From: Orbicella franksi
Taxonomy: Eukaryota
Direction: 5' to 3'
Length of the DNA: 64,000 nucleotides
Assembly: GCA_964199315.1 (NCBI GenBank)
Contig: OZ116699.1
Span: forward strand, 5,766,001-5,830,000
Position 1 is the stretch's first letter. Each line of letters opens with the position of its first letter. The notes beneath the pieces are model-generated. The model did not search any database. It was not told the DNA's origin and saw only the letters and a list, made by a program, of their open reading frames with translations. Made by a program: the position numbers and the translations under genes. Below are positions 30,997 to 63,770 of the stretch, in pieces.

Positions 30997-31357
30997 TCAA
31001 GCAACCGGTTCCTCGTCGTCTTCCCTCGGTCGTCTCCTTCTTTGCCTCTTGCTTGATTTCTTTCGGCTCTTCTCCGGCGAGTCGCCAAACATCTCGTCCA
31101 CCAGTTCTTGGTTGTGTTCTTCAGTAAGAGGTTGGTAAGCTCCCCTCTTTTGAGTAACACTCGGTAAATCTCGTTCGTCGTCGGCTACTCTCGGTAAAGT
31201 TGGGGCGGTATTCTGCTCCTCGTCTGTGAGTGAGCGATAACCACGCAAAGATTCATTCAAGTTAAATCCTTTTTTACTACTTTTAAAGTTTATTGGTGGA
31301 AGGTCGTTATTTTCTTGTTCTTTTTTCTTTGATTTTTTCTTCTTTTTGCTTTGTGTT
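30997..31357 (-). CDS. EVC2-like terminal exon
   Basis: TTTTCAATTGCAG|A TQSKKKKKSKKKEQENNDLPPINFK...RQRRRRPREDDEEPVA*. Confidence 0.75.
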
Positions 31358-42700: not shown

Positions 42701-45700
42701 CGATTTCTTGCCGCTGTTTTTGCAACATTTTCTGCTTTTCACTTATCGCGGCCACAGTGTCTAAAGGGAAACAGAGTATCTGACAGGTCTCAAACAACAC
42801 ATTACATTTATAAGAACAAACTTATATTCAGTTATGTTTCGTTATTCATTTATTTATTCTCATTCTGCGACAAGAGAAACTAAGAGTAGTAGAGTAACTA
42901 AGTCGTTGCTATCGAGAGACCGTACCTTTCTCGTTGTGAAATTGCTTCAAAATTCAGTGATGATCAAGTTTTGGTGGCGAAGATTTTATAATACTATCGT
43001 TTACGCAAGAGATGATAATTAAAAGGTCGGTAGGCTCTCATAAGTAAAAGGTTCTCCCTTGCAAGAGTTCCGTAACATGGTAAACGACTTGATGCGTTAC
43101 TATCCGAATTCTGATGATCATGTTAAGAAAACATTATTCAGCATTCACATAGAGCGATTTGAAATTGATTGTCGAAAGTAATCAGGCAATTACTTTGGTT
43201 TTGGTTTTGGTTTTGGTTTTACTACGGTTTGAGAATTGCGCAAGTAGTCTGATATTGGTAAGCTGCCCCTACGTCTCCGAGGATGGGAAGTAACTGGTTT
43301 GGTTTTGATTTTACGACACTCAGTTGAAAACCGCTCTAAAAACAAAACAAACACACAAACAAACGATGAAAGCAAGGGAAGGAAAAAGTGGAAGTTGTGG
43401 AAAACAAACGGTAATGGTGACAGACTGAGAATGTAGATGTACCTCCAACGAGAAGTTCCTGCTTACCGATTTCTACTTGTTCAAATTTCTCATCTTGTTG
43501 ATCTTCAAACTCCTTCATCTGCCGTTGATGCTCGCGCGCCTGAAAACCAGTTAAACTAGTTTAGCGAGATAACAGGAGAAGCTATGAACACAACTTAAGA
43601 AAATCTTGCTTTGGCAGAAAAAAGATGGTTAGCAAAATTAGTCAGACCAAAGTAAGTTTTGAGCACTCTTCGACCTTGGAAAAAATCCCGCCGTTTTACA
43701 CCTTAAAATTGGGAATTGTTAATTCTTGTGCGAATGTAAGATATAGTACCTTTTCCTCGATTCTCTTTTGCTTCAGTGCCGTCAGTTTCTGGTGTAATTT
43801 CTGTTCCTGTCGCTTTCTGTCCTTTGCAAGCTTATTATCCACCACTTCCACTTCTTTCCTGAAGCGTTCAAGGTAGACGGCGGCATCTTCGGAGTTAAGA
43901 TTGGATGATCTAAAGATGCACAGTGATAAAACAGAATTTTACGACTCAAAAGATGTACATGTAACAGGAAATAGCTGTGGCATTAACCAACCACAAAAAA
44001 AGCTATTTACATTAAGAGCATTCTCAGCTTCTACTGCGCCTGCGCTTAGAAACCGTGAACACTCAAACAGAAGGAACAGCATTACAAGAGGAGCACAACA
44101 TTACCGAACAAGATTCTCTAGTGCTTCAGCCTGGTTTTCTTCAAGCTTTCCCAAATCTTTCTTCTTGCGTTCTTCTTCCTCTTGCTATTAAAGAAGTACC
44201 ACAAGAAACAACAAATTAACGATTACTAAATAAATTAATAAATTAATTATTTATATGACTGAGATAATTACTCCATTTTTACCCCATTTCTACTCCTGGG
44301 TGGAGAAGGGCACTGCGAGAGTTAAATGTCTTGCCCAAGAACACAACACAATGTTCCCGAGAAGGGCTCGAACCCGGACCGCTCGATTCGGAGGCGAGCG
44401 CACTAACCATGAGGCCACCGTGCCACCACAACAATGCAATGAGACAATCATAATTAAAAGCGGATTCATATAGCGGCAACTCACTTTCTGTCTCGCCAAA
44501 GCCCGTCTCTCCGCTAGTCTCATCTCTAGCGCCATAACACGTCTAGTTCGTTCCTCGTCCGTCGCCTTGTCAATGGCGGCCATGTTGGATAGGTGATTCT
44601 TCATGATGGCGCTCGCTTGTTCCTCATTCAATTTGGAGTCCTTGATCAAGTCCTGTATCAGTTTGTTCTGAGACTCTTTCAAAGCAAAACGCTTGCTGAT
44701 TGATACTTCCTATAACGAGAAAGAAAATTAAGCAAACGTCAGAATCAATGGCATAATATAATGTAACCCTTTTTCCTTCTCACTCAAGTACTGTAGCTGT
44801 AACTTTCAAGGCTGTACAAGGTGGTTCTAACTTTTACGTCTGCAGATGAAACCCTACTGTGTGACCATTCAAATGAAAGCTATCCAGCTGTACTTGCACG
44901 TGGTACTGTAGATGAAACACTAGTGCGTGACCATTCCAATAAAAGCTATTGACAAACACTTTTGTGATGTTTGTTATGTTGTGCAAGGTACTTCCATGTT
45001 CTAACTGTTAGAGACATTGTAGTTTGCGACCAGTGTGTGAGACAAGTGACCATTTAAATGCAAGGTACTGAGCAGTACTTTCATGTGGTACTGTTTTTTA
45101 TGCGGTACAAGGTGGTTTTAACTTTTAAGTTTGTAGATAAAAACGGACTGTGTGACCATTCAAATGAGAGCTATTGGACAGTACTTTTATGTGTTACTGT
45201 TTATTATACTGCATAAGGGCCAAGGTGGTTCTAACTTTCAAATCTGTGGATAAAACCCTAATGTGTGACCATTCAAATGAGAGGTTATATTGAGTATTAT
45301 TTTCATGTGGTACTATTGTACTGTCCAAGGTGAATCTAAATTTCCAATTTCTGGATGAAACCCTAGTGTAACCATTCCAATAAAAGCGATTAAGCAGTAC
45401 TTTCATGTGGTACTGTTAATTATACTGCACAAGGTGGTTCTAGCTTTTGCGTCTGTAGATGAAAGCGTAGTGTGTGACCATTCAAATGAAAGCTACTGAG
45501 CAGTACTTTCATGTGGTGCTGTTTATTGTACTGCACAAGGTGGTTCTAACGTTTTAGTCTGTAGATGAATCCCTGGTGTGTGACCATTCAAATGAAAGCT
45601 ATTGAGCAGTAGTTGTGGTGCTGTTTATTGTACTCTTCAAGGTGGTTCTAACTTTTGAGAATGTACATGAAAGCATAGCATGTGACCATTCAATTGAAAG

Positions 45701-48700: not shown

Positions 48701-51700
48701 AGAGTTGTGAAGCATCAAAACGAGCTGGGAGTCTCGACTTAATTGTCCATTGCACACAAATTTGTTTTCAAGAGGTGGCAAGTCAGTGACAGTATAAATC
48801 GTTTTGTGTTTGTGACAACCACCGTCTTAAAGGATAACCGTAGATAAATGAAATCATCTCCATCTCTTTCCAGTTTTCTCATTCTTTGGTACTGAAACAG
48901 GTTTTACTGACAACAGCCGGTCATGCATACAAGTGAACAACGCGTTGCGATTCATTACCTATTTAACTCTTTCTCTGTTTGAGAGGCGTTGTCCAGTGAC
49001 AGAATAGGAACAATGCTTTCGTCTGTTTGAACAATGCTGTAAAAAAAAAAAAAAGATTTGAATCATCTCTTGAAATCTATAGAATCGTCGTGTACAAAGT
49101 TGCACAGTTAAAGCAGTTATGTCTTCAAGATTTTTTGTTTCTCGCACGTGAAAATTCAAACCTAACCAACAATTGTTCTCGAGACATAACACGGATTTCT
49201 GCAGAGTTAAGCTGTAACCATAGCATTTTTCGATCCAATCTCAAACATCTCTGGAACAAAGGATAAACTCAGGTCAAAAAGAAAGAGGACTGTTTTCTTA
49301 GGTCTTGTCCACACTACTCCGGATAAAATTGTAAACGGTGTTTTCACTCTGAAAACGCATCAGATGTTTTCCGTCCACACTAAGCCGGAGAAATTTGAAA
49401 ACGCAAAGATGTGGAGATGAGCTTGAGAAAAACTCTGGCAGAGAAATCGTATAATTATCATAATGTCATCGATTTCGAAAAGCTTCGTTTTCAAAATGTT
49501 TTCTGTCCACACTAGAACACAAAGGCGGCGCTTTCAAATTCCTCCGGTTTTAAGAGCGTTTTCGGAAAGCTCCGATTTCGGTCTGGGTTAGTGTGGACGC
49601 TAGGCCTAACCGTAGAAATAGAGCTGCGTTTTCAAATTCCTCCGGCATAGTGTGGACGGGTCCTAGAGTTATCATGTTCCTTAAACTCTCCAAAGCTTAC
49701 GTAGTCTCTTTGTGAGTTTCTACAGGTTTGCTGTCGGGCAGCTCGTCTCCGTGGTAAATGTACTGTGACCCTCCAGTCAGGACTGTCATGGTAGTGGTGT
49801 TAGTGAAGCGCTAAAAGAAGAGGAACAGAGAACATGAAGCACGGACCTTATGTCTCTTGGAAAGTGTCTCGCCCTAGCCTGCAGCGAAAATTACCCTTAA
49901 ACAGTTTTGTTGTTGTTGTTTGTTTAGGTTTTTGTAACGTATGTTTCTTTGTTTGTTCGTTTTTTTTTTTTGTTTTTTGTTTTGTTTTTTCTTGGCTTCC
50001 GCATCTAGATCAGTACAAGAGCGCATCTTGAAAAAGATCTCTATTGTTTAAAGATTGTCGTTCGCAATCTATGTCAATCTTACGGAGCCGTAATTATCCT
50101 TGTTTAGAGTACCAGTTGGTATAACTAAACAAGTTTAGTTTGTGTTGAGCGGGATACTTAAATAATCACATCGTAAAACAAGAGAGAGGCATTCCAGCTT
50201 AAGTGCAGAGCACAACAGCTCGTTAGCTCCTCGTTCTGCCATGTGACTGGTTGTCATTGTGTAAGTAGTCCCTAGTCCCAGGCCTTACCGTGTAGTAGGG
50301 AGCCACCTTGCCTTTGTCGCAACACTTAAGGACTAGTAACACCAAGATGGCGGCGATCACGGCACCGACCAGCAAGCCAAGAAGAACACCAAGAGCAAAG
50401 AAACCAAACACTTTACGGCGCTGGAAGAAAAAAGGAAACGTTGGCGCTCGTTTAACGTAAATACCGAAAAGAGATTCGAATTAGCGCCCTCCCTGCAATA
50501 AGTGCCCCCTTTCTATAAGAGGAAGAGGTGCGGTAGCCTCATAGTTAGTGCGCTCGTCTCCCGATCGAGCGGTCCGGGTTCGAGCCCTGACCGGGGACAT
50601 TGTGTTGTGCTCTTGGGCAAGACACTTTACTCTCACAGTGCCTCTCTTCAACCAGGTGTATAAATGGGTACCGGCGAACTTAATGCTGGGGGTAACTCTG
50701 CGATAGACTAGCATCCCATCCAGGGGGGAATAAAAATATTTCTAGTCGCTTCATGCTACAGAAAGCATAAGCGCCCCCTCCAAAAAAGCGCTCCTACAAG
50801 GAACAGGACCTTGACATAGAATATATACTGGTTGCACGAATGAACTATGAAGTCTGCTTTGTCAACTGATTGTAATATTGAGCACCCTGACTATCAGAGC
50901 CCCTATTCTTACAGTTCTTGAATAAAGGTACCTATTGCTTTTTTTTCTTTTTTCTTTTTTTTCTTTTTAATTGAAATACTGTACCACTTTCAGATGTTTA
51001 TGTCCAAAAAGAAATACACGCTCTGTCCCTAATACCCCCCCCCCCCTCCCCCTCCCCCGACCTCCCCTCTCCAATAGACGTCCTCCCTGGGCTATCAAAA
51101 GTAAATCAGCACCCCGGGCGCTCAATGGAATCATTACGGTATTTATTAAATGGGTAAATAATAAAACAATTCTGGATTCACGTTTTGATACCCAGAATAG
51201 TCAAGCCCGAGGTCGTAACACGACTGTAACGCAAAAACAGAATCTATCAACTATTTAACTACAACATTGCTGTAAATAAGGTACGAGGGTAACTTACATT
51301 CAGTTGTGAGTGAAATCAGTATCTCTTTTTATGGTCAGCTTTTCCCGTTTGCATTACAATCTAATTCAATGTGGATGCGAGGAAATTTTTGGACAGTTTT
51401 GTAGTCTTGTCCAAAATTGCCTCGCATCAATGTTGGATTATACTGTAATGCTGATGAGAAAAGTTAACCAGGAAAAGGCTATTAAGTCTGAAGACTGAGG
51501 TCCCGTACACACTACGCCGAAAGAATTTGAAAACGCAGTTTTATTTCTACGGTTAGGCCTACCGTCCACACTAACCCCTCAAGCAAACGGAGCTTTTCGA
51601 AAATGCTCTTCAAACCGGAGCAATCTGAAAACGCCGGCATTTTGTTTCCGTGTGGACAGAAAACATTTTGAAAACGGAGCTTTTAGTAAACGGTGTAGTC

Positions 51701-53091
51701 ACGATAATCACGTGATTTCCCTGACCGAGTTTTCCTCAAACACAAATCCAAAATGACCGGTGATTGTTGCGTTTTTGAATTCCTCCGACGAAGTGTGAAC
51801 AGGGCCTGAGTGACGACTTTTTTCTTTGTTAAACCTTTCCTCGTTCACTTAGTTGATCGTTTTCGCCCTTACCTCTGGTTCATTTACATCATTTCTTTGG
51901 AGGCAACCAGTGCTGGTATCACTTGACAATCTGTATGTTAGGCTGTTTAGCTGTCAAATAAAAAGCAATTTATTACACGACTGCGACGTGATAAACGCAG
52001 ACAGATGCTTACCTTTCGCGCACGCACGCGTTTTCCAAGAATAATTCACGGAGACGCAACAGTTTATCAACAGATTAAAAAGAACCATTATGATAAATAC
52101 TTTACTGAACTAGCTTGTTCGGTCCGTATTGGAGAATATTTTTTGTAAGTTTATGGACCTAGCCTGCGGCTTGGCCCATAAACCTGCCAAAAAAAAAAGA
52201 ACTCTACCAATACTTCACGAATTTGGACCTTTCTTTAGTTCAATAACATAGATGTAAACAATTATTACAGCACTGAGCAGTTTTTCATTCGTGCCAAACG
52301 TTGTGTGATCTAGAACACGATTGAGAAAATCTGGCGGACTTATATGTTATTCACATAAAACTATCACATCGATTTTCTCTCTTTATTTCAGTCGCTTGTT
52401 TGCGTCCTTTTGTTTCTTTTCTTGTTTGTTTGTTGTTGTTGTTGTTGTTATTTTGCAACAGCTGTGTTAAAATTGTTACTAATGCCTTGAAAAAACCAAG
52501 ATGAAGTTGTTAGGTAGATTTGGAAGGGATAGCGGCTTTTAGTTATTAGTTCTAAGTGCTTTATTCCTAAGACACAACGACAGAATTTGTATATGTTTGC
52601 CACGTATTTTCAGTTTGAGATCAAACTCGTGACTCGCTTGCACATGTTTTCCCGCGCGTTGCGTCACCTACATGTATTTGCTTCTAGTTTTGAATGGTTT
52701 ACTGGATTTTCTGCGCCTTTTGTGATTAGTCAGAGAGAGTATTTGGAATTTGGTTCCATGACACTCAGTTGAAAGTCACTCTATCTGGAGTGTTTTACCT
52801 GCACGCTCTTCCACGAAACTTCAGCAGGAACGCGCAACGTTGCTGGCTCCTGGAAGAAAAAATATATTATTATATAAATTTTACGCGTGCCTCCATTTTA
52901 CAAGGCATACAAAAATGTAACTGGCGAACCCAAATGACCTACAAGTGAAGAGTTCTTGATTTACACCTAACTGATTAAACATTATTACGAAAATATTTCG
53001 TAATAGAATTAGCTAAGCCACAAGTTTTCTTCTATATGTTCTTTTTGTTCCTATCTTTGGCCATTTTAGTTTGCTTGTCTATCTGCCTGCC

Positions 53092-53136
<45 letters not shown>

Positions 53137-56100
53137 GGGTAGTTGGCTGGCTAAGTGGCTGTCTACTTTGGCTATGTCTCTGCCTGTTTGAATGTCCGTC
53201 TATATCGCTAGCTGGCTATCTTGTCTATCTATCTGTCTGGACCAGACTTGTAACACCAACGACTGACAAACACTATTCACTTGGCTGTGAACATGACTTC
53301 CGCTCAGGTCGTCACAACGTCAGTCACCAACAACAGCTCTTTTCAGATCTACCCTCATCCGAACGATTGCACCATACGAACTTTGGTATAAAGACAGAAA
53401 TAAACAGGCAAGGATCAGGAACTAACCTTTTCATCGACTTTGAATCGGGCCACGTAGATAAAAGATCTCGCCTCGCCAACTATAAGAAGACAAGATAGTT
53501 CAATGAACATCTTTGTAACACTGTTAAGTTACTCTGTATAACAACGAGTCGTTGTGTGAGGGTTTTCGTGACGTCCAGAATAATCAAGGATGAGGTAAGT
53601 GTTACCAGTCGAAGCTGAAGGCATAGGCTGCCACGCCTAAACCCCCAGAGCGGGTTCTCGCGATGTCAATGATGGAGATAATCGAACGAGAGCAAAAATC
53701 AAAACCCCCCAAAAACTCCATAACCCTTATAATCAGTAACCCTCTAGAAATAACAAGGGTCCACACAGAGACCATTCCAACTTACCAAGCAGACTTGTCA
53801 ACATAAACCGGACTCCAAACGTGTTCTTTTTCGGGGAAGTGACAAAGACGTCTTTAGTTGAAACATCGGAATCGTAAAAATCCATCCCTTGGGTTGAGTC
53901 GGTGACAGTCAAGTTACGAGCGTCATACAGAGAATCGTTTGCGTGGCTCACCGTCACGTTGAACAGTATAAGCGGAGAGTCCATATTTCCTTGCAATATC
54001 TACAAAACACAAAATGTGAACTTGAAAAAGGGGGACCATGTCACACTCATTTGCCAAGAGTATACAAATTAAATGTTGTCATTCAGGTATCGATACTTGA
54101 ATAACAATAATTTAAGGTTCCTTGAAGGTCGGCAAACACTAGGGCACATGTTGTGGGGACATGAAATGGGGACAAGTTGAGCAACACTGTTATATCGTGT
54201 GACGTGCCATATTCCGCGCCATTTTCTAAACTACTCATTGGATAGACAGTTTAGAATTCCCAAGAGAAACGACGCTAATGCCCCCGGGGGGGGGGGGGGG
54301 GCATACCCATATGAAAGGTCAAGGATGTTCGTTGTCTCGCTTAATTTAAAGAGTGTAAATCAAGGAGTTTGGTGTCTCTTTAAGGGCAACCAGGACGAAA
54401 CACAACTATTTTTTCATGTCAAAGTATCTTTTAGGGTGCACTGGAAAAAAATAATAATAAAAGAAAACGTCGTCATTTCTGTTTTAAGTGGTATCTAGAG
54501 CTAAGACAAAGCTCGAGCCACGATTAGTCTCCCTTAGAAGTTATATTCAAATTTTCTGACGAGCATTCCCCCCCCCCCCCCACCCCTCCCCCTCCTGCCT
54601 CCGGGAACTAATGGCTCTTGATATTCAAGACTTGTTTAGCAACAAAAAACAAGACTCGTCATTCCCTAGAAACAAGACAAGAGATGTACGCCGCTGTGAC
54701 TTGTTGCCTTTCAAGCCTGAGTTAAATAAATATCTTACCTCCACAGTTTTCACAATCGACAGAAGTGGTTTCAGCAGCGGTCCGATAATAACAAATTTTT
54801 TAACAGAAGAATCTGATCCAGCATCAAACTTCAACGTGGCAAGCAAACTGAGGGGCCGTCCGCTCAACACCAGCGGCCTGTTTGCAGTCCGAAACTTCAG
54901 GAAAACCTCAATGGTGTCATTGGGTCCAGAACCAGGCAGATTCAATACAGAACCAAACGCCACATTCAGAGCTTCATTCCCATTCACTGGTGTTATAGTC
55001 GGGAGCTGGGATAATGTTAAGCCGTCTCCGTGCTTCACATAGCTTTCATTCAGAACAGGAGAAAGGGCATACACCACACCGGCATTGCGTTTGACGCGCG
55101 ACCTACATGTACAAAAGATCAAATAAAGAACATTAGGGCATTAGTTGCTGGAGCAGTTTTCAAATGCGTGTCGTAAAACCAAAGTAAATAATCACTCGGC
55201 CAATCACAATTACACAGGCAATCCAGAGAACCAATCAAAACTCAAAACAAAAGCCGACGAAAAGCGCGGGAAAACGTGTGCGAGCGAGCTACACTCTACG
55301 ATTGGTTTTGGTTTTACTTCTGACAAGATGACAGTGTGGCGCAAGTTTTTGAAGGCCAATCTCGTAGCGTGATACATCTACCGAATGCAAACAAATGAAC
55401 GCGAATTTTACTTTTAACACTCAAGAGAAAACTCTATATTGAATTACATAGTCTTTAACACGTAGAGACTAAAGGAGCAAAAGAATAAAAATATTTAAAT
55501 GGCCTAAAACAGCAAAGTGCGCGCGTGTAGTCAAATTCAAAAGAAAAGACCAACTTTGCATGTCTCACCTCGGTCTAACCACTTCACTGCCACTCCTCAT
55601 TCTTGTTACATCTCTCCTTTTACGAGAGAGATCAATGACATTGGCAGGAACCGCCGGCAGATCAACAACCACACTTAAATTGGTTTCACACTCCGGCAGT
55701 TGTAGATGAAGAGTAAAATTAACAGGATCCCCTGCCTGTAACTTCTCCGCGTTCTGACTAGCTAATATTGTGGAATTGATAGACTTCGTGGTGAGATTGG
55801 CAAGCTTTTTCTCCTTGTAACTGGCAAAATTGTCAGGTCTATTGCCGACATCCGAGCTATAGTACTCGACAGTCACCATTTGAGATATCAACTGCTTGGG
55901 ACTGAGGCGACCTAGAAGAACTGATACATAACTGCATTGGATGTTTTGCGATGGTGCGAGCGATGAAATAGAAAGTATCGACTCTTGTGTAGTGACATTA
56001 AATGTCGGTGTTCCTCGGCTGCATGTTACGCTCAGCCTACTGGTATCAAGTGCTTCAAAGGTTACCACAATGGACAAGGAATGGGCTGTTGTTGTTGGAT

Positions 56101-59100
56101 CAATGTTTTCCAGCGTGAGGTCATATTCCACTCTGTCGCCACCATCAAAAGATCCAGTAGGGGGGGTAAAGCTGACTGTCACAAAGGGATCAGGACGGAA
56201 TGTCAAGAATGTACCCTACAGGGGAAAATAAGCCAGTTAACAAAATCATTGCACAATACCACAGTCCCCTCAAAATATATAGGGCTACAGGTAAACTGTA
56301 TATAGCTTACTGGTCACATTGAATGCCAAAAATGCTAAATGATTCCCTGATATCACAAATTCACAAAACGTGCGGAGGCCTAAAGCTACACGTTCCATCC
56401 AATGGCTCAAAGCTAGCGGATTTTTCTGCTAGGCCAGTGGATATGATCTATTCCATGCCCAAAGGACAGTTTGGGACTTTTTTTAGCAAGCAAAAAGTAC
56501 TGTCTTAAGCCATGCAGAAAGGTCTATGCTCCAAATTGCCAAAAGTTTCTTTTGACCGCGCCCAGTACCACACTTCTCTGGAGCATCTTTAAGATCACTC
56601 TATTCCTATTGTCTTCTTCCCAAAGTTATACCCAAGAGTAAACATTGTATTGCCTTAAAAATTAAATTTCACTGTGAAGCTGACAAGCGGCTAGAATATT
56701 GTCTTGAGGTGCCCCGATAACATAAACTCTCGGGAAAGATAAAAACGGACAAAACCGAGACCCTGCGACTCATCACAAAGGACTCTGAGATTTCAAGACC
56801 AGATTGAACGTGTTCAAAGACCCGCAATTTTGTAGCCTTTTGCAGCATTTGCAACATCTTTGGCGTAAAGGTTTGACGATCTGCAAGGAGAATTCATAGT
56901 CACAGCTCGATCCTGAAGGCCTCAAAACCCTACAAGGACTCACACAAGTCTCTTGATGTTGTTGTTGTTGTTATTGTTGGTTTTGTTGTAGCTGTTGTTG
57001 TCTGAAGTTCCTTCTTTTCAAACCGAGCAGAACCAAACCTCACAATGTATTTATTTCACATTGCCACACAGTTACATGCAGCTTCCACTATTTAAATACT
57101 CCACACTTGCAGCTTCTCTATAACAATCCCCTTCAATGAAGTTATGAACTCCAGATTACACAAGGATGCAGCCTGAGACAACTATTTCACACAAAAATCA
57201 AGTGCAGATAATCTAATTCTTTTAGTATAAATCTACTAGTCATTCAAATAAATTATCTAAAGCCTCTTCACAGACAATTCAAAACGCAAAGGGTAGGCTG
57301 CCACTTTGTCTCGTCAGCCACGCACTGCTTAAGGCTGCTCACTACCTCAAACAGAATAGATAGTGCAAGTAGCGTAACCAATAAGACAACAGCATTGGTG
57401 ATAGAACACTAGTACATTTAAGCTAATTAAACTTATCCTTGTCTCTGTGGCACAAGAAGGTACTATGACTTCCCATGTAACATCAGACTGCTGTTGTTCA
57501 GTACTCATTTGCAAACATCGCACAATACCTGATCAGAGTTCTCCTCATACTTCCTTCCTTCTCGAGGGGCCAGACTGGGCGGTAATGTTACATAGGAGAG
57601 GTACACTGGAGATGATACAAAAATACTCGGCAAGAGGCTGCTTACAGTTGTAGCCTTGTATTGGAAAGACACACTCTGTCCAAGGGGTAGATCATTGGAT
57701 ATTTCATAGACAAGGACGTTGTTGTCAACATTATTGTACCTAAAAGACAAAGTAAATAATTTAATTAGTACCTCAAGAGCTACTCAGCTTGTTATCAAGT
57801 CAATCAATCAATCATCAATCATTTTTTTTTTTTAATTTCTTAGTTTGCATTTCTCAGTTGGACTGGCCTGCGCATAGCCAGTGCTAGTCTAGGCTGGCCA
57901 GTCTAATAAATATTATCAAGATAATAGTTACAAGTGTCTTTAATATCAATCAATAGAAAAATAGAAAGCTTGCAAAAAGTAAATAAAATAAAAATAAAAC
58001 AGTGGGAGAAGAATGAGAAAAGAGGTGAGGGGTTATCAGATAATATTATTTTTAAATTGTTTTTTACTACTACTGATATTTTAATTTAGAAATAATTTTG
58101 TGTACCTCAATGAAGGAATCTTCGTCTTCGAGAACACTTTGCAGTATATTTTTAATACTGAGTTTGAATGATTGTTTTGGTAGTTCTCTCAGAGAGCTTG
58201 GTATCTCATTCCATAGTTTAGCACCAATTCTTAAAAAGGTATTTTTTTTTTTTATTTTTTTTTTTTTTTATGCTAAGGTTTAATTTGTTTGATGTTAGCC
58301 AAACATACAATTTATGTAGTTCAGCATTCACAGCATATTCTAATGACTTAAGGTTTAATAAGATGTATAAGGCATATACTGGTAAGATATTAGTGTCATC
58401 AGCAAAGAGATAAAAGTTGAGTTTTTTGGAAGCGGTATAAATATCACTGTTATACCTCCCAACTCAAATACGTTTTCCTATTGGACAAGAACATGTCACG
58501 TGTCATGGGTCAAAACTCACTAGGGCGAACAAAACTCACTAACTCCCTGAGAATGAACAACTTGAACTTTCGACTTGCGTGTGATCAGGTTGTGCTTCTT
58601 GAAACCACAGCAAATTTGTGAGCCAGCTGGCATCAAGCAAACGATTTCTTCACAGTGTTTTTTCTTCTTTTTTTTTTTTTTTTCTTTCTTTTTTTGAGTT
58701 AGGAGGTATAACAAAACACTTAATGACTGGTCCTGCAGAAAACAGTGAGTTTTGTATCCCCTCGACTTCAATGTTCCCCTCGGCTTTGCCTCAGGGAACA
58801 TTGAGGGTCTCGGGAAATTACAAAACTCTCTTTTTCCCTTGGGGCCAGTCATTAACTGCATACTGATACACAATAAAAACATTAGCTTTTGCAGTCTTCC
58901 TCTCTAACCCAAAATTGTATGTAACAGCAACAAAAAATTCCACTAAATGGGCTTCTCAAGTTATAACACTCCACTTTTTAGCATTTGCACCCTCCCAATC
59001 AGATAGAAGTCTTGTCTTCACATGCTTGTACATCAAAGTTTAAGAACCAACTCTACAGGGTTTAAATCTTTAAAGAACTGCATGATATGGTAGAGACCTA

Positions 59101-62100
59101 CTGTGCAGTACATGGACATGTACATTAAGTAGCTTAAACGAAACTTTTTCATTCAGACTTAACATCAAAATTTCATTAAGAGCCGGGCAGTGGGCAAATT
59201 AACCAATTGTGAGGATGGTTTTGCCTGCCTGGTTTGACCATCTAGAGGAAAGGTTTTCTTTTAAGGAGTTCATTTCAGAAAGTTTTGCCCTCCTGCAAGA
59301 AACTGCTTCCTGCTGAAGACGTTTATGAAACCCCAGCATTCATGGGCCATGAAAAAATTTTCATGGCATTTTCGAGAGTAAATCATGGAATTAATTTTTC
59401 ATAAAAGAGTGTCTTCTATGTACAAAAGTATTACCTTAGGTTTCCACTAGGGGCCTGGTCTCCAGCTTTCACTGACAGATCACCTCTGCTTGGAGTACCA
59501 GATTTTCGGACATTCTTGAAGTACTCTTTAGGTGCAGCAATTTCTAGAAGCACCCCAAAAGCAGGTGAAGTTGACCGTTTGGAATGATGCAGTTGTACAG
59601 TAAAGGTGAGGTCATGATCCAGCTGTACTTCAGAGGTCTGATCCACACTCACAGTGACAGAAAGGTCAGGTTCAATTATCTTTAATGAAATTGAGACAAA
59701 GAGAACTTACATGTCAGTTAGAAATCACAAGAGTATGTTATTATTTGTTGTGTTTTATTTTTATTTTTCTTTAAATTTATTTTAATTATTTATATTTCTA
59801 TTAAACTTTGCCTATTTTCTTTGTTTTCTTTTTTTCACTTTATCGGGTAAATTTGGTTTTTTGGTTTTATTCATATTATTTTTTCGAAAGTGTGTACAGC
59901 TCATATGTTTCAGTTAATCCATGAGTGTGAGATTTTAACATTTATGGTTTGTTTGTACAAGCGGTCCAAAATAACAGGCCAGCACTTACATTGTATCTTC
60001 GGTTTCTGTGGCATGAAGAGACTTGGAGTATTTCTACTCCCCCCTGGATGGGTTGCTAGTCCATCACAGGGTTACCCCCAGCATTTGATTTGCCGGTCCC
60101 TATTTATACTCCTGGGTGGAGAGAAGCTCTGTGAGTGTTAAGTGTCTTGCTCAAGAACACAACACAATGTCCCCAGCCAGGGCTCGAACCCAGACCACTC
60201 AATCCCAAGTGAAGTAAGCATGAGATCAAAGTTCTTTAGCCCACTGTTGCAAGACCCGTACTGTACCTAAGCCATAAAAGTGGCAAGTACAGTGTATATC
60301 GGTACTGTATAGCAGTCAAATAACTTGCACGCTGCAGTCTAGAGCAAGAGGTCTGGGTAAAACAGGGTACGCATAATAATTTCAGAGCGGAAAAACGTAC
60401 TGCACAGTTTGCTGCATAGCCCTTTTTTGCGGGCTCAGGCAATGCAGGCTGCAGTAGTGGAGAAAATGGCAGACTGTAATAAGGAATGCAAACATGTCAC
60501 TCAGTTAATTTATTTACACTTTTATGGATGCAGTATGTAAAGAGGGTTAGTGAATACTGTGTCTATGATCTACACACCAAAATTTCTAATGCAAAGAAAT
60601 AATTAAGGGTTTGGAAACCTTCTAATTGAACAAATGTTATTTTTGTCCGAAAAACTTGATTCACCCCGAAAAAACAACACACCAGCTTTCCATTAGCGAC
60701 AAGAATATGTTGCTACTTTCCGTGAAAATTAGGAAAGCGTACATGTATTAAGTTAGTAACATGATCAACGAAATACCTGCAAATTATTTAAACTTAGAAC
60801 CTGGAGAGTGCCCAAAACATGCGCATACCTTTTACGTTTTTCTGCTCTCAATGTACAATTAATAAAGTACATGTAACAACATACAGTGCAAATTAAAGAC
60901 TAATGATTAGGTGATTAGGCTACTGACAATACAAGCACTTGCTCACACCTTCAACAGCAATGAAGAAGACGGTTGACCAAATCCATTGACACTTGTACTC
61001 GAAACAACAGCATGTGTTCTTCCATTTGTATTCTGCAGAACATCTACAGCTCTCATGGTTGCTTGATATTCAATTACATTGTCACCAGATGACTGGGAAA
61101 AGTTTCCAACATTGACGACAGTGCCAAGATTCCCACCTACATTTGCTCCAGTGGCAGTAAGATCTAAATAAATATTAAATAATAAAGAAAAGTTAAGTTT
61201 ACTCTTAAAAAAAAATAATTCTATCCAAATAAATCCTATTTAAGTTATTTCATTAGTAATCCATTCCAAAAATAATTGTACAGCATCATGTGCATGAAGT
61301 ATATACATTTACATGTGTGTAATTAATATATGTCACTGGGTTTGACTACAGGTGTACATGTAGCTACTTTACATTGCAAGGCTGTAAGTATGTAAAGTAA
61401 TAAATTATCTCTTTTATGACCCTGACACTACCAGGGTTTTCATAAATTAAGGGTCGTGCATTGGGCAAAATAACCGGCTATGGGGATGATTTTGCCCACC
61501 TGGTTTGGAATTTTTTTCTTATAAAGAAGATTCGTTCAAAACATTTTGCCCGCCTGGGAGAACCAGTTTCCCTCCCGCTGGAAATGATAATGGACCCCTG
61601 AACTACATTGTACATGTATTTCTTGATGACTTGAATTTGACAAGCCATAAAAATAAGAATCTGATTAAGTAGGTACAAAAGGACTGCCTTGCTGAGACTA
61701 ATGAAACATCTTGATATACTGCTGTTGAGAGTTTTTAAAATTACATGTACCAGCTGGTATATAGCCTGCGAACGCAGACGTATTTCCAGCTGTCACTTGG
61801 TTTCGCCAAAAAATAACGTCTGCAAACTCGAGCCAGAAAACGATTTCTGTGACGTAGTAATTCTAGACGAATCACAGCTTAGCTCAAATAACCACAGAAC
61901 TACTGCGCGAGGTATTCTCTGCGAGGAGCGCTCGAGTTTCATTCTATCATGGATTCTGATTGGCCAAGGAGAAACAAAAGTCATTACATCACAGAAATCG
62001 TTTCCTGGCTCGGGTTCGCAGACGTTATTTTTCGGCAGAACCAAGTGACAGCCGGAAATACGTCTGCGTTCGCAGGCTAGCTGGTATACTACTTAAAATT

Positions 62101-62763
62101 AAGGTTTGATTGGTCGCATTAACATAAAATTGTCATCTATTAGAAAATACACTGTGAGAAACAATTGTGCAAGCAACTAAGCTGTACTTTTGCAATTCAA
62201 TAGAAATACAGAACTACAATGTGTCATGAGTACTCTGTTAACACGATAAACTTGAAAATTTGGGAGTACTCACACAAACTGAGGAAACTCGCCCAGGTAA
62301 GGCTCAAGTTCCCTCAATAGAGATATGGAAAATGGTTCCTAATCCTCTCAATAATTAATTGCACTTACTTGTTCCTCTAATCTGCCCGTGAAGTGATTTT
62401 ATATTTCTTCCAACTTGAATCACATGCCCAGCTATTCCTTCAAAACCTGTTCCATTAATATTCAATGTGAAGTTGGCATTTGTGGACACTGGAATGAGCA
62501 CAGCAGCATGCAAAACTACATCCTCTCCAATGGTGACAACCATCAAGTCTTGTGTTGGATGGGGCACATTGCTACTAACAACTGAGAGAGCAGATGGAAT
62601 CACCTGCTTAATCTCAATTATCCGTGTATCAACACATTCTAATGGCAACCATCCTTTGCGAGTGTATTCCAGGGTTAAGTAGTTGTCATGGTAGCTACCT
62701 GCAGTCACAGAGGGTTTGATTTGATTGGACAGGTGTCCGTACACCCAAGAAGATGAATTGAAC
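30997..62763 (-). CDS. EVC2: EVC2/limbin-like single-pass membrane protein with a very large beta-sandwich ectodomain (37 exons in window, 5'-incomplete, at least ~1,880 aa)
   Basis: All 36 junctions are GT-AG and phase-consistent, with no internal stops. TM segment VFGFFALGVLLGLLVGAVIAAILVLLVL. Cytoplasmic LDVQSTVALDVDLETQRQNMFIKALKLLARKL..ISSEQENK and LNSEDAAVYLERFRKEVEVVDNKLAKDRKRQEQKLHQKL align with my recollection of human EVC2 (LEIATLNRADADLEACR..LSPQVERK; LDEDQMEMLLERAQTEV..KL..D.K..KKKLHQKL). EVC versus EVC2 is not tested. Confidence 0.65.
32728..32797. mobile_element. Tiny hairpin MITE (CCTCGTTCCCAGGGTCTCTC family)
   Basis: CCCAGGGTCTCTCATCTT and AAGATGAGAGACCCTGGG inverted arms; TSD not resolved. 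Confidence 0.65.
33305..33376 (-). CDS. EVC2-like exon
   Basis: RPSALEARIRRASAAPITTPPPI; phase 2 to 2. Confidence 0.72.
33824..33910 (-). CDS. EVC2-like exon
   Basis: SSNEIDELLSKIYGPGHTKESKQTSLDP; phase 2 to 2. Confidence 0.75.
34053..34111. mobile_element. 59-bp MITE, CAACCTCGTTCCC TIR, 9-bp TSD
   Basis: CAACCTCGTTCCCAGG and CGGGAACGAGGTTG; flanks TACCAAACG and TACCAAACA. Confidence 0.78.
34298..34386 (-). CDS. EVC2-like exon
   Basis: NIKLISILVQQGKLQEEELESVLKFLFPA; phase 0 to 2. Confidence 0.78.
35065..35259 (-). CDS. EVC2-like exon
   Basis: DELSQYMSNLNVNNMAMKLRKAAMKARHQKELNDLRTRMQKE...AVEEQ; phase 0 to 0. Confidence 0.85.
35812..35877 (-). CDS. EVC2-like exon
   Basis: VLRERLQQRMKQREETLVLKQK; phase 0 to 0. 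Confidence 0.78.
36409..36622. repeat. Minisatellite built on a GGGGATTATCACCCC core (~20/40-bp period)
   Basis: Repeated GG(G)ATTATCACCCC(C)T and GAGTATCC/TACCCTTGGG units. Confidence 0.75.
36862..36915 (-). CDS. EVC2-like exon
   Basis: DTKNLEENLKLQKEKQEQ; phase 0 to 0. Confidence 0.75.
37488..37613 (-). CDS. EVC2-like exon
   Basis: ISKIAMQQQALGQLQAGLVDELESKGTFKDPETQKIMEKYQK; phase 0 to 0. Confidence 0.82.
38195..38810 (+). mobile_element. 5'-truncated CR1/L2-type LINE (3' end of ORF2, UTR and A-rich tail)
   Basis: Open frame 38200-38619 YKVRLIKLKLLPLNYWLEYLDLVFFFKC...FRDFYFNRITLIWNSLAENIKDSDTISSFKSKLK...CPKC...CTC*, followed by an AATAAT tail near 38790-38810. Confidence 0.85.
38962..39063 (-). 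CDS. EVC2-like exon
   Basis: VREEMLAERSKRLEEHHEKLGAIIAKLQIEKAKQ; phase 0 to 0. Confidence 0.85.
39553..39678 (-). CDS. EVC2-like exon
   Basis: DRDYGDKILVEGEDIEMIKKHEQEKMAAMKEDELQIEDEMEA; phase 0 to 0. Confidence 0.8.
40152..40260 (-). CDS. EVC2-like exon
   Basis: LTLNKLRQRQMLEDKLAERRKRRMQQLEQKQMNETK; phase 2 to 0. Confidence 0.85.
40759..40851 (-). CDS. EVC2-like exon
   Basis: DLIVNQVAMSEEERDRIIQEHERNLAELES; phase 2 to 2. Confidence 0.82.
41020..41117 (-). CDS. EVC2-like exon
   Basis: KRLEKQRAALEKKMKEEQAEQAEVRKQEDKIV; phase 0 to 2. Confidence 0.78.
41310..41468. repeat. Palindromic interspersed repeat
   Basis: AATATA(TA)TCAAACAG and CTGTTTGATATATT ends, plus inner CAAACACC..GAAG and CTTC..GGTGTTTG arms. 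Confidence 0.6.
41683..41792 (-). CDS. EVC2-like exon
   Basis: LSESEKEAILERHMADVAMQQDAREQERRRQREMLE; phase 1 to 0. Confidence 0.82.
42004..42076. repeat. Perfect 35-bp inverted repeat with 3-nt loop
   Basis: TTCGACTGTTAGATCTACAGTCTTCGACGGGTAAA-ATC-TTTACCCGTCGAAGACTGTAGATCTAACAGTCGAA. Confidence 0.95.
42148..42250 (-). CDS. EVC2-like exon
   Basis: AAEEVETLRDQQLREGNQMIKNNVQKMYQELVNK; phase 0 to 1. Confidence 0.82.
42672..42760 (-). CDS. EVC2-like exon
   Basis: TVAAISEKQKMLQKQRQEIEEIERNSDRE; phase 1 to 0. Confidence 0.82.
43150..43338. mobile_element. MITE, TAGAGCG(A/G)TTT..AA.TGA.TGTCG.AAA TIR family
   Basis: Inverted termini; related sequence at ~52560-52785 and ~55147-55438. Confidence 0.6.
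43467..43539 (-). CDS. EVC2-like exon
   Basis: AREHQRQMKEFEDQQDEKFEQVEI; phase 0 to 1. Confidence 0.82.
43750..43909 (-). CDS. EVC2-like exon
   Basis: SSNLNSEDAAVYLERFRKEVEVVDNKLAKDRKRQEQKLHQKLTALKQKRIEEK; phase 2 to 0. Confidence 0.88.
44105..44184 (-). CDS. EVC2-like exon
   Basis: QEEEERKKKDLGKLEENQAEALENLV; phase 0 to 2. Confidence 0.82.
44278..44427 (-). mobile_element. tRNA-derived SINE (3'-truncated)
   Basis: TGGCCTCATGGTTAG...GGGTTCGAGCCC...GGGCAAGACA. Confidence 0.8.
44485..44709 (-). CDS. EVC2-like exon
   Basis: EVSISKRFALKESQNKLIQDLIKDSKLNEEQASAIMKNH...MALEMRLAERRALARQK; phase 0 to 0. Confidence 0.88.
44805..45800. repeat. ~103-106-bp satellite, ~9 units, intronic
   Basis: GTGTGACCATTCAAATGAAAGCTA(T/C)TGAGCAGTACTTTCATGTGGT.CTGTTT..CAAGGTGGTTCTAAC recurs (for example 44859, 45150, 45263, 45472, 45578, 45681); an isolated fragment lies at ~34660-34720. 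Confidence 0.9.
45851..45964 (-). CDS. EVC2-like exon
   Basis: REKKNILELLKRRQDAQEQELKQNLKLEQHVEMEKLRK; phase 0 to 0. Confidence 0.82.
46688..46768 (-). CDS. EVC2-like exon
   Basis: SRLDALHREQRKEREETENKIKGLVNE; phase 0 to 0. Confidence 0.78.
46874..46981 (-). CDS. EVC2-like exon
   Basis: FGLEIKQAIGAVAFKMAAEYKRKSAELRNRLQKEGK; phase 0 to 0. Confidence 0.8.
47281..47580. repeat. ~31-bp CpG-rich minisatellite, ~10 copies
   Basis: Unit TGCTACACGCGCGCGCATGTTGCACTGTCTT. Confidence 0.9.
47754..47889 (-). CDS. EVC2-like exon (EVC2_like core)
   Basis: LDVQSTVALDVDLETQRQNMFIKALKLLARKLRVKREISSEQENK; phase 2 to 0. Confidence 0.85.
48008..48435. mobile_element. Kolobok-like MITE
   Basis: TTAA|GGTGGCTCTCCATAG and CTATGGAGCCACC|TTAA. 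Confidence 0.72.
48959..49036 (-). CDS. EVC2-like exon
   Basis: IVQTDESIVPILSLDNASQTEKELN; phase 2 to 2. Confidence 0.8.
   Translation of the reverse strand, partial: HCSNRRKHCSYSVTGQRLSNRERVK
49301..49663. mobile_element. PIF/Harbinger MITE (GG...GTCCACACTA family)
   Basis: GGTCTTGTCCACACTA and TAGTGTGGACGGGTCC; repeated TTTGAAAACG motifs; TSD imperfect. Confidence 0.75.
49701..49810 (-). CDS. EVC2-like exon
   Basis: RFTNTTTMTVLTGGSQYIYHGDELPDSKPVETHKET; phase 0 to 2. Confidence 0.75.
50289..50420 (-). CDS. EVC2-like exon (transmembrane)
   Basis: RRKVFGFFALGVLLGLLVGAVIAAILVLLVLKCCDKGKVAPYYT|GTAAGG. Confidence 0.88.
50523..50775 (+). mobile_element. tRNA-derived SINE
   Basis: TAGCCTCATAGTTAG, GGGTTCGAGCCC, body and CTAGTCGCTTCATGCTACAGAAA tail. 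Confidence 0.82.
51499..51806. mobile_element. PIF/Harbinger MITE (same family as 49301)
   Basis: TGA|GGTCCCGTACACAC and GTGTGAACAGGGCC|TGA; 3-bp TSD. Confidence 0.8.
51873..51950 (-). CDS. EVC2-like exon (juxtamembrane)
   Basis: TTTTTATTTGACAG|LNSLTYRLSSDTSTGCLQRNDVNEPE|GTAAGG; phase 0 to 0. Confidence 0.6.
52095..52250. repeat. Palindromic interspersed repeat with GCCTGCGGC apex
   Basis: TTACTGAACTAG and CTTTAGTTCAATAA ends; TTATGGACCTAGCCTGCGGCTTGGCCCATAA centre. Confidence 0.6.
52799..52849 (-). CDS. EVC2-like exon (ectodomain)
   Basis: EPATLRVPAEVSWKSVQ; phase 0 to 0. Confidence 0.7.
53091..53240. repeat. (CTGT)n/(CTAT)n microsatellite
   Basis: About 11 uninterrupted CTGT units followed by degenerate units. 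Confidence 0.85.
53427..53479 (-). CDS. EVC2-like exon (ectodomain)
   Basis: GEARSFIYVARFKVDEK; phase 1 to 0. Confidence 0.7.
53786..53999 (-). CDS. EVC2-like exon (ectodomain)
   Basis: ILQGNMDSPLILFNVTVSHANDSLYDARNLTVTDS...; phase 0 to 1. Confidence 0.85.
54739..55102 (-). CDS. EVC2-like exon (ectodomain, contains RVKR)
   Basis: SRVKRNAGVVYAL...PLLSIVKTVE; phase 2 to 0. Confidence 0.88.
55569..56215 (-). CDS. EVC2-like exon (ectodomain, contains RKRR)
   Basis: GTFLTFRPDPFVTVSF...GDRVEYDLTLEN...GDPVNFTLHLQLP...SRKRRDVTR; phase 0 to 2. Confidence 0.9.
57529..57739 (-). CDS. EVC2-like exon (ectodomain)
   Basis: YNNVDNNVLVYEISNDLPLGQSVSFQYKAT...GRKYEENSDQ; phase 2 to 0. Confidence 0.85.
58075..58452 (-). 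mobile_element. Internally deleted L2-type LINE fragment
   Basis: NSDIYTASKKLNFYLFADDTNI (RT catalytic FADD motif) joined to a C-terminal RIGAKLWNEIPSSLRELPKQSFK...EDSFIEVHKII. Confidence 0.75.
58450..58858. repeat. Inverted-repeat element plus ~140-bp hairpin with GGCTTTGCC apex
   Basis: TTATACCTCCCAACTCAAA and TTTGAGTTAGGAGGTATAA; then CACTTAATGACTGG...AATGTTCCC-TCGGCTTTGCCTCA-GGGAACATTG...CCAGTCATTAACTG. Confidence 0.65.
59435..59679 (-). CDS. EVC2-like exon (ectodomain)
   Basis: IIEPDLSVTVSVDQTSEVQLDHDLTFTVQLHHSKRSTSPAF...; phase 0 to 2. Confidence 0.85.
60011..60208 (-). mobile_element. tRNA-derived SINE (5'-truncated)
   Basis: GGGTTCGAGCCCTGGC..GACATTGTGTTGTGTTCTTGAGCAAGACACTT body on the minus strand. 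Confidence 0.78.
60949..61163 (-). CDS. EVC2-like exon (ectodomain)
   Basis: NLTATGANVGGNLGTVVNVGNFSQSSGDNVIEYQATMRAVD...LLLK; phase 1 to 0. Confidence 0.85.
61762..62079. mobile_element. Young 318-bp MITE, long TAGCCTGCGAACGCAGACG TIRs, perfect 9-bp TSD
   Basis: TIR TAGCCTGCGAACGCAGACGTATTTCC, with imperfect symmetry extending ~100 bp; GCTGGTATA at 61753-61761 and 62080-62088. Confidence 0.92.
62369..62763 (-). CDS. EVC2-like exon (ectodomain; first in window)
   Basis: TTTAG|G..FNSSSWVYGHLSNQ...GQIRGT A|GTAAGT; phase 2 to 1. Confidence 0.85.
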
Positions 62764-63194: not shown

Positions 63195-63470
63195 GAAGGC
63201 GTGGTGGCCTCGTGGTTATTGCATTCATCTCTGGATTGAGCGGTCTAGGTTCATGTCCTGGCCAGGGACATTGCATTGTGTTCTTAGGCAAGACACTTTA
63301 CTCTCACATCGCCTCTCCCCACCCAGGTGTATAAATGGGTAACCGCAAACTTAATGCTGGGGGTAACCCTGTGATGAACTAGCATCCCATCCAGGGAGGA
63401 GAAGAAATACTCCTTTAGAGTCGCTTCAATTGCTACAGAAACCAGGATAAGCTCTGGCCTGATGGGCCAC
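63195..63470 (+). mobile_element. tRNA-derived SINE (near full length)
   Basis: GGCGTGGTGGCCTCGTGGTTA...AGGTTCATGTCC...AGTCGCTTC..TGCTACAGAAACCAGGATAAGCTCTGGCCTGATGGGCCACT. Confidence 0.82.
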
Positions 63471-63496
63471 TTCCCCTGCGAAATAAATTCCCAGTA

Positions 63497-63770
63497 GTCT
63501 GGGAATTCCTAGGAATTCCTAGGAATTCCTAGGAATTCCAAGTTATTCCAAGACATGCAAATTATGCTTTATCCAAGACCTTGGAATTTCTGGGAATATT
63601 TGGGAATAGTGGAAGTATGACTGGGAATTATTGGGAATTCCTAGGAATTCCAAGTTATTCCAAGCCATGCAAATTATGCTTAATCCAAGACCTTGGAATT
63701 TCTGGGAATATTTGGGAATAGTGAAAAGTATGACTGGAAATTATTGGGAATTCCTAGGAACTCCTATTAT
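63497..63770. repeat. GGAATTCCTA microrepeat with a ~110-bp duplication
   Basis: (GGAATTCCTA)n; 63530-63640 is similar to 63640-63750. Confidence 0.8.

Follow-up and report, generated by a model that had tools for sequence, protein, structure and literature searches.

The window analysed here, a stretch of 64,000 nucleotides (nt) from Orbicella franksi (GenBank assembly GCA_964199315.1, contig OZ116699.1, positions 5,766,001 to 5,830,000 of the forward strand), carries on its minus strand a gene that extends past the window end. Taken together, the data are best explained, with high confidence, by a single-copy coral orthologue of EVC2/limbin whose product joins a DUF11-type ectodomain of ~1284 amino acids (aa) to a transmembrane (TM) helix and a coiled-coil tail. 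Of the 2214 aa of the composite protein, 1284 form the N-terminal part and 911 the tail, with the TM helix at residues 1285-1303 between them. The helix, with a Kyte-Doolittle value of 3.24 over these residues, is the sole TM segment of the protein. The TM helix of mouse EVC2 lies at residues 209-231 (PMC3052239), and the far larger ectodomain that an earlier, sequence-only reading of this DNA had described is thus borne out. That reading has the identity and the fold of the protein largely right, and goes too far in proposing pilin and isopeptide features and a bacterial origin.

Identity of the Gene

On the spliced open reading frame (ORF), the PF12297 (EVC2_like) profile scores 58.8 bits (E 5.8e-16, cut-off 25), with profile positions 8-428 of 429 aligned to ORF residues 80-517. 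A 675-aa protein named 'limbin-like [Orbicella faveolata]' (P0090), which comprises the tail only, is 93% identical. Both results agree with the EVC2/limbin identity proposed from the sequence, and a 2011 report describes EVC2 orthologues in cnidarians (PMC3052239). The amphioxus protein P0094 from Branchiostoma belcheri matches 98% of the spliced ORF at 32% identity, and it and the Porites evermanni gene model P0089 are also matched by PF12297. Other database relatives of the ORF come from Oculina and Acropora. Human, cow and mouse limbin rank 11, 20 and 26 among the 550,129 models of the Swiss-Prot AlphaFold library, and they match the coral model through their ectodomains (human 137-298, with a TMq of 0.50, the highest listed; cow 66-185; mouse 54-194). 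The gene is single-copy by exon searches of the genome. Orthology to vertebrate EVC2 is probable, as judged from the limbin-like name, the amphioxus match and the limbin ectodomain folds.

The EVC family also includes paralogues that humans have lost, and EVC3.1 and EVC3.2 are known from the ciliomes of anemone, urchin and choanoflagellate (bioRxiv 10.1101/153437). The coral gene could be one of these rather than EVC2, in which case its function would be Hedgehog-independent. However, PF12297 is matched end to end, a 93%-identical Orbicella protein bears the limbin-like name, amphioxus P0094 matches nearly the whole ORF, all three Swiss-Prot limbins share the ectodomain fold and exon searches disclose no second genomic copy, all of which makes an EVC3 identity very unlikely.

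Searches with single exons or with unspliced genomic sequence gave a different picture. Pfam reports neither EVC2_like nor DUF11 on 24 single-exon pieces (E up to 10), and six-frame genome searches with PF12297 and PF01345 return no matches, this gene included. Because the PF12297 genome search missed this very gene, such exon-level negatives carry no weight. An ESM Atlas search with one cytoplasmic exon gives nothing above 0.77, and sequence searches of the PDB with three exons return nothing useful. The public models for Orbicella, Oculina and Acropora (P0090, P0092, P0093) are tail-only proteins of 628-725 aa that lack the ectodomain and TM exons, and two of them are named 'hypothetical protein'.

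Gene Structure and Transcript Evidence

The reading frames between 62.8 and 50.2 kb on the minus strand are collinear in order and frame with those of another coral-like genome (L001/L002), at 30-78% aa identity, and the collinearity extends over some 25 small coiled-coil exons to 33.3 kb. Splice sites were picked jointly in the two species from tblastx collinearity, GT-AG borders, phases that fit and the closest match between the joined peptides. Exons E2-E11 (62763-51873, minus strand) join into 825 stop-free codons, residues 449-1273, with a GT-AG pair at every intron, and run in frame into the TM exon E12. The ten spliced exons and at least 820 aa that the sequence-only reading had placed upstream of the TM helix are thus recovered by an independent reconstruction, with identical ends at 62763 and 51873. 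That the gene is 5'-incomplete in the window is also correct, as the first exon, E1 (448 codons), lies 4.8 kb past the window end (G000:C2:5834781-5836126, equal to L004:4781-6126). Joined, E1-E12 give 1317 stop-free codons; the orthologue has 1300 codons, 38.7% identity and identical intron positions and phases. A homologue search with the TM exon gives 13 orthologous exon fragments, all of its matches being genomic exon fragments and none a spliced ORF. Altogether the gene spans 37 kb or more of the minus strand and has no fewer than 37 coding exons.

The predicted 28-nt junction between E11 and E12 is present verbatim in a JGI metatranscriptome contig of 3905 nt (Ga0099804_1072020, L012). 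This contig is 96-100% identical to the window. It begins inside intron 7 (54677), continues unspliced into E8 and is spliced as predicted from there through E8-E11, the TM exon and 25 cytoplasmic exons, mapping to 53999-33279 with the stop codon at 33297-33295 and carrying one ORF of 1073 aa (L012:668-3886). Because the contig splices them into one ORF, the ectodomain, TM and tail exons stand on one message at least from E8 on, and a division of ectodomain and TM exons between separate genes is contradicted by a single RNA from E8 onward. RNA runs from about 15 studies contain exonic words, and the RNA and DNA runs that match the window carry labels of coral metagenome or of coral species.

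For E1-E7, membership of the same message is indicated indirectly by comparative sequence. The phases are kept in two species. Domain 8 of the ectodomain has its first strand in E7 and its remainder in E8-E11. The partial Porites model (P0089, 1779 aa) aligns as a single high-scoring segment pair to composite residues 238-2064, spanning ectodomain, TM helix and tail, and amphioxus P0094 is uninterrupted across the point that corresponds to E7/E8. The locus might instead yield two products, with E1-E7 forming a separate secreted protein or a secreted isoform that ends in intron 7, and with a short EVC2 that starts inside intron 7. The start of the sole transcript contig within intron 7 would suit this, as would the read-through from E7, which adds 38 more codons before a stop at 54625. 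However, a start inside intron 7 would provide no signal peptide, only an internal Met, the LSIVKT strand in E7 would be parted from the rest of domain 8, the Porites and amphioxus proteins are continuous across this point and the phases agree in both species. Two products are accordingly very improbable, and one continuous message remains the preferred interpretation.

At least 678 nt of intron 7 remain in the transcript contig (L012:1-678, window 54000-54677). This retained intron represents either unprocessed RNA or a truncated secreted isoform.

Fold of the Ectodomain

The AlphaFold2 model of E6, built with 17 homologous exon fragments, has a predicted local distance difference test score (pLDDT) of 83.9 and contains one beta sandwich of ~135 aa and the beginning of the next. 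The model of E1 (26 sequences, pLDDT 82.3) contains three consecutive all-beta domains. In these models, domains 1-3 and 6 are shown as tandem CnaA-like beta sandwiches of the DUF11/CLIPPER type, of 130-170 aa each, with the Greek-key arrangement of seven to nine strands. The two models and the periodic spacing of the motifs together suggest that the whole ectodomain consists of about eight domains of this one type, which would start near residues 1, 175, 348, 503, 655, 810, 950 and 1128.

Comparison with structure libraries leads repeatedly to the DUF11 family. Among the 30 best matches in the AlphaFold DB clusters, 15 are named DUF11, with E down to 1.9e-9. When the ESM Atlas is searched by shape, all named rows for E6 are DUF11, CARDB or DUF7507 (TMq 0.54-0.61, rmsd 2.7-4 Å), and the matches of E1 are tandem DUF11 arrays. 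A language-model search also ranks DUF11 first. The solved CLIPPER (= DUF11) domain 9ifr aligns with a Z of 11.7 and an rmsd of 2.6 Å over 119 of 123 residues (VIA). Other solved chains with Z of 10-12 are Gram-positive pilins, MSCRAMMs and antigen I/II, among them BcpA, EbpB, FnBPA and SdrD, and cohesins are also found among the top structural matches. FN3, cadherin and I-set Ig folds are absent from the top structural matches, and Pfam gives no FN3, cadherin or Ig hit; ordinary metazoan modules of these kinds, which would have told against the sequence-only reading, are thus replaced by a DUF11/CLIPPER and pilin/MSCRAMM-type fold.

The modules had been described as two types, A and B, that alternate along the protein. 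The motifs of both types are present, but because both occur within single sandwiches they do not mark two alternating kinds of domain. The LSIVKT motif that had been noted in one type B module is also present, at residues 1134-1139 (window 54762-54745). Self-BLAST of the ectodomain detects no repeat similarity.

Relation to DUF11/CLIPPER and the Isopeptide Question

Sequence matches point in the same direction as the fold, at scores below the curated thresholds. In the Porites ectodomain Pfam reports PF01345 (DUF11) and no other family (10.3 bits, E 0.92), in a match that starts at LSINKTV of domain 8, and TIGR01451 is the only NCBIfam family reported for E6, that is, for domain 6 (14.5 bits, E 0.026). 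The libraries searched hold 24,736 Pfam and 18,950 NCBIfam models, and the family cut-offs are 24.6 bits for PF01345 and 24 bits for TIGR01451. Because every DUF11 sequence match falls under its curated threshold, the modules are not filed as members of PF01345, and of the DUF11 repeats named in the sequence-only reading it is the fold that is upheld, with a best Pfam DUF11 score of 10.3 bits failing to uphold the sequence part. Alignment of domain 8 with bacterial DUF11 repeats by hhalign gives a probability of 84.8%, and phmmer comparison of the eight modules with five bacterial proteins is uninformative.

On this evidence the coral modules would function like DUF11 (PF01345) and probably share ancestry with it. 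They could also descend from an old eukaryotic E-set sandwich that resembles DUF11/CLIPPER by recurrent topology only, without specific shared ancestry. Such a history would account for the sub-threshold DUF11-type hits, for identities of only 10-23% in the fold alignments, for the eukaryotic AP-mu, TRAP-beta, C3/A2M, integrin calf and PIGT domains that also reach Z of about 10, and for the empty Pfam result on 24 exon pieces. It would not lead one to expect that DUF11-type models are the only families reported from the two libraries, and in two different modules, nor the hhalign probability for domain 8, nor that three independent structure libraries and a language-model search all rank DUF11 first, nor a 9ifr match that spans 119 of 123 residues. 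Recurrent topology is thus unlikely, though it retains some weight, and shared ancestry with DUF11 is preferred.

Isopeptide-forming fimbrial repeats had also been proposed. TIGR04226 (isopeptide-forming fimbrial D2) gives no hit on five ectodomain pieces at E up to 10. In DUF11/CLIPPER domains an intramolecular Lys-Asn bond with a catalytic Asp is common to some members but not to all, and in the coral no Lys reaches 85% conservation in either alignment A1 (domain 6) or alignment A2 (domains 1-3). As judged from these alignments, an isopeptide bond is excluded for the modules tested, domains 1-3 and 6. In domain 8, K1138 (in LSIVKT), D1175 (in LTVTDS) and N1249 (in QLNSLTY) are kept in three corals, whereas in amphioxus the K and the N are both Q. 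The order of this candidate triad is that of the CLIPPER triad K715/D748/N806 (bioRxiv 10.1101/2025.04.25.650565), with a K-to-N spacing of +111 vs +91. A real Lys1138-Asn1249 isopeptide bond in domain 8 would nevertheless be quite unlikely.

Extracellular Signatures and Predicted Processing

The N-terminal part contains 39 N-x-S/T sequons vs 16.9 ± 3.6 in shuffled sequences, while the tail contains 3 vs 2.9. The same contrast between ectodomain and tail is present in Porites and weaker in amphioxus. Of the 24 sequons in E1, 10 recur in 23 or more of 26 species, and each of the seven Cys residues recurs in 24 or more. These signatures, with the single TM helix and the 911-aa tail behind it, suggest that the N-terminal part is extracellular and glycosylated, with sequons enriched on that side of the membrane only.

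Two furin-type motifs are located at the E6/E7 junction, inside domain 7: RKRR at 55613-55624 (minus strand, residues 1002-1005), which is RKRR or RRRR in most fragments of alignment A1, and RVKR at 55098-55087 (minus strand, from residue 1022), in E7. Porites has RRRR/RVKR at the equivalent place, L001 has RRRRR/RFRR and amphioxus has RRRR(KR). These are the only R-x-[KR]-R motifs of the three ectodomains, and they stand 249-283 residues before the TM helix. A proprotein convertase may therefore cleave at RKRR/RVKR, as far as the motifs indicate.

The first Met of E1 (M1) is invariant and has a good Kozak context in four species, and L010 has an in-frame stop upstream of it with no AG between. 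A signal-peptide exon was sought in L004:6127-6300 and ext 70127-78000. An ORF 830 nt upstream, 'MVSGYTTLLSFMLILG', was tried as such an exon and rejected, having no usable donor. Three signal-peptide-like ATG ORFs with GT donors occur 3.3-4.6 kb upstream of E1 (ext 74757, 73700, 73411) and are candidates only. Word shares of the RNA data upstream of M1 are ambiguous, because the assemblies include unspliced RNA. As a start at M1 conflicts with the secretory signature, there must be either a 5' exon that escaped recognition or an unusual route of targeting.

Origin of the Array

The amphioxus protein provides an intermediate. Its last ~190 ectodomain residues align with coral domains 7-8, and because its ectodomain has ~540 aa, a multi-domain ectodomain is not a cnidarian oddity. 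The short vertebrate ectodomain appears to be one domain of the same kind, since all three limbins match through their ectodomains and the mouse TM helix lies at 209-231. Most simply, a DUF11-like domain is an old component of EVC2 that was reduced to one copy in vertebrates; equally possibly, the N-terminal domains are a cnidarian expansion. The idea that the whole array is ancestral was dropped, as hhalign of coral E1 against the N-terminal ectodomain of amphioxus gives a probability of 0.1%.

Acquisition of the ectodomain array from bacteria by horizontal transfer, with introns gained later, had been suggested from the sequence and does not find support, as there is no close bacterial relative and the best full-length E is 4.7e-4. 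The nearest folds and the only sequence hits are indeed prokaryotic surface proteins, and the published description of DUF11 places the family in bacteria and archaea (bioRxiv 10.1101/2025.04.25.650565). However, the bacterial similarity is marginal, reaching E 2e-7 only through repeated short stretches as against 4.7e-4 for the full exon, the domains are split by ten introns of conserved phase, the membrane-proximal part is common to a chordate and the fold to vertebrate limbin, and the N-glycosylation and furin signatures are eukaryotic. A recent transfer is excluded because no close donor exists, and bacterial transfer in general is extremely improbable. A DUF11-like domain long resident in EVC2, or expanded in cnidarians, is the interpretation carried forward.

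Several observations weigh against the overall interpretation given here. That E1-E8 are continuous is argued from comparative frames and a single predicted Porites model, and intron 7 is where the transcript contig starts. The DUF11 scores of both Pfam and NCBIfam are under the family cut-offs, and the fold matches form a plateau, falling from Z 12 to 10 across 50 entries that include eukaryotic AP-mu, A2M/C3 and integrin. The structural models cover domains 1-3 and 6 of the about eight. No signal peptide was found ahead of E1; M1 resembles a start codon, but in the model residues 2-17 are already part of the domain 1 strands. Finally, the N-terminal 350 aa of amphioxus P0094 do not align with coral E1.

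Exon Map and Surrounding Features

All exons are on the minus strand. E2 (62763-62369, residues 449-580) covers the end of domain 3 and the start of domain 4; it is conserved with L001 5780-6165, with GT-AG borders and consistent phase. E3 (61163-60949) encodes residues 581-652. E4 (59679-59435, residues 653-733) begins domain 5 with the motif EPDLSVTVSV, and E5 (57739-57529, residues 734-804) ends it. E6 (56215-55569, residues 805-1019), for which 16 homologous exon fragments are known, comprises domain 6 and the start of domain 7, and E7 (55102-54739, residues 1020-1141) comprises RVKR, the remainder of domain 7 and the first strand of domain 8 (LSIVKT). The core of domain 8 is in E8 (53999-53786, residues 1142-1212), followed by E9 (53479-53427), E10 (52849-52799) and E11 (51950-51873), which holds the final strands of domain 8 (QLNSLTY) and the stalk. 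E8-E11 are all in the transcript contig, which confirms every junction from E8|E9 onward. E12 (50420-50289) encodes the TM helix (~50405-50331, residues ~1279-1303) followed by KCCDKGK, and lies within the Pfam EVC2_like match.

The tail is encoded by 25 exons, mapped from the transcript contig with boundaries accurate to about 2 nt and conserved collinearly in L002 and L006. It is rich in coiled coil and in E, K, R and Q (E 14.8%, K 11.6%). Cytoplasmic exons 1-5 are at 49810-49701, 49036-48959, 47889-47754, 46981-46874 and 46770-46688; exons 6-10 at 45964-45851, 44709-44485, 44184-44107, 43913-43750 and 43541-43467; exons 11-15 at 42761-42672, 42252-42146, 41794-41683, 41117-41020 and 40851-40759; exons 16-20 at 40262-40152, 39681-39551, 39063-38962, 37617-37488 and 36915-36862; and exons 21-25 at 35877-35812, 35259-35065, 34389-34298, 33910-33824 and 33378-33295, the last ending with the stop codon at 33297-33295.

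The introns contain copies of an interspersed repeat in both orientations (50484-50741, minus; 44255-44473, plus; 63287-63508, minus; 60107-60270). Its translation (...RVKCLAQEHNTMSPVRARTRTARSGDERTNxEATAP...) makes misleading ORFs beside true exons, and it resembles a fragment of a short interspersed nuclear element (SINE) or other transposable element. Intron 9 contains a tetranucleotide microsatellite at 53035-53215, which translates as TDRQTDRQ... or SVCLSVCL.... Downstream, 2 kb past the EVC2 stop, an 87-codon ORF at 30997-31260 (minus strand) has an acidic-basic tail (…KRQRRRRPREDDEEPVA). It is outside the EVC2 coding sequence according to the transcript contig and may belong to a neighbouring gene. 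Upstream, a conserved element ~13.7 kb from E1 (ext 83691-83897; G000:C2 ~5849700-5849900) corresponds to a V-set/fn3-like gene call in L011:5492-5984. Because this element resembles a V-set/fn3 gene, there is no head-to-head EVC neighbour, and such a neighbour is reported to be absent from the sea anemone too (PMC3052239).

Proposed Model and Significance

EVC2 has been studied as a cytoplasmic scaffold for Smoothened signalling, and for the small ectodomain of the vertebrate protein we know of no assigned fold or function. In the proposed model, the about eight coral domains would form a rigid, heavily N-glycosylated stalk, a few tens of nm long, that stands out from the membrane of the cilium. 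Cleavage by a proprotein convertase at RKRR/RVKR, within domain 7, would leave a membrane stub of ~260 aa, made of part of domain 7 and domain 8, which would be near the size of the vertebrate ectodomain (~180-290 aa). The N-terminal fragment of ~1000 aa would then be released or stay attached through non-covalent contacts. The tail would have its vertebrate role, as the partner of EVC at the base of the cilium, downstream of Smoothened. Most likely, although this is speculation, the stalk would serve extracellular binding or adhesion, or the sensing of the ciliary environment.

A bolder combination would be that EVC2 started out in the ciliary membrane with a long, furin-processed stalk of CLIPPER/DUF11 domains of the prokaryotic type, that corals keep an autocatalytic Lys1138-Asn1249 isopeptide bond in the domain next to the membrane and that vertebrates retain only the stub. 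Taken as a whole this is improbable. If it were true, it would place a CLIPPER/DUF11-type domain family firmly in animals for the first time, would provide the first intramolecular isopeptide cross-link in an animal protein and would imply an extracellular ligand or adhesion function of the EvC complex that has been lost or overlooked.

The protein family and its partial annotations are known, while the size of the EVC2 ectodomain, its fold, its processing site and the gradient of its size across phyla appear to be undescribed; our literature search found no paper that ties EVC2 to DUF11 or to a beta-sandwich fold. The fold, the approximately eight coral domains, the convertase site in common with amphioxus and the chordate intermediate of ~540 aa together make an extracellular role of the EvC complex testable. 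They would also add animals to the range of a domain type that one recent survey treats as confined to bacteria and archaea. The exon model can be used to mend split or truncated public annotations, such as the 675-aa Orbicella protein and the 'hypothetical' tails of Oculina and Acropora.

Comparison with Known Systems

Gram-positive pilins and MSCRAMMs (BcpA 3kpt, EbpB 9lj6, FnBPA 4b5z, SdrD 4jdz) belong to the same fold class as the coral modules, with Z of 10.5-12.1. The coral protein differs in having neither sortase/LPXTG signals nor a conserved Lys-Asn/Asp-Glu triad, and a TM helix ties its domains to a coiled coil in the cytoplasm. With the DUF11/CLIPPER domains (PF01345, TIGR01451, 9ifr) it has in common a nine-strand CnaA-like sandwich, an arrangement in tandem arrays as the stalk of a surface protein and the motifs (E/K)PxLSxxK/V..., GDxVxF/Y and LxxGE. 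It differs from them in being eukaryotic, intron-split, predicted to be N-glycosylated and below the family cut-offs, and in its domains with deep alignments it is without the isopeptide Lys.

EVC3.1 and EVC3.2 belong to this protein family as well; they are ciliary and occur in cnidarians (bioRxiv 10.1101/153437). The name and the best matches of the coral protein point instead to EVC2. Amphioxus P0094 (1545 aa) differs from the coral protein in its ~540-aa ectodomain, its clear signal peptide, the position of its TM helix (571-589) and the Q residues in place of the K and N of the candidate triad. It shares PF12297, is 32% identical across the whole tail, the TM helix and the final ~190 residues of the ectodomain, and has its polybasic RRRR site 249 residues before the TM helix. 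Vertebrate EVC2/limbin (human Q86UK5, mouse Q8K1G2, cow Q8MI28; PF12297) has an ectodomain of ~180-290 aa, apparently of one domain, whereas that of the coral protein has 1284 aa in about eight domains, with internal furin-type sites and no signal peptide identified. Common to coral and vertebrate proteins are the family, one TM helix, a coiled-coil tail of ~900-1000 aa and a beta-sandwich ectodomain of the same fold directly before the membrane.

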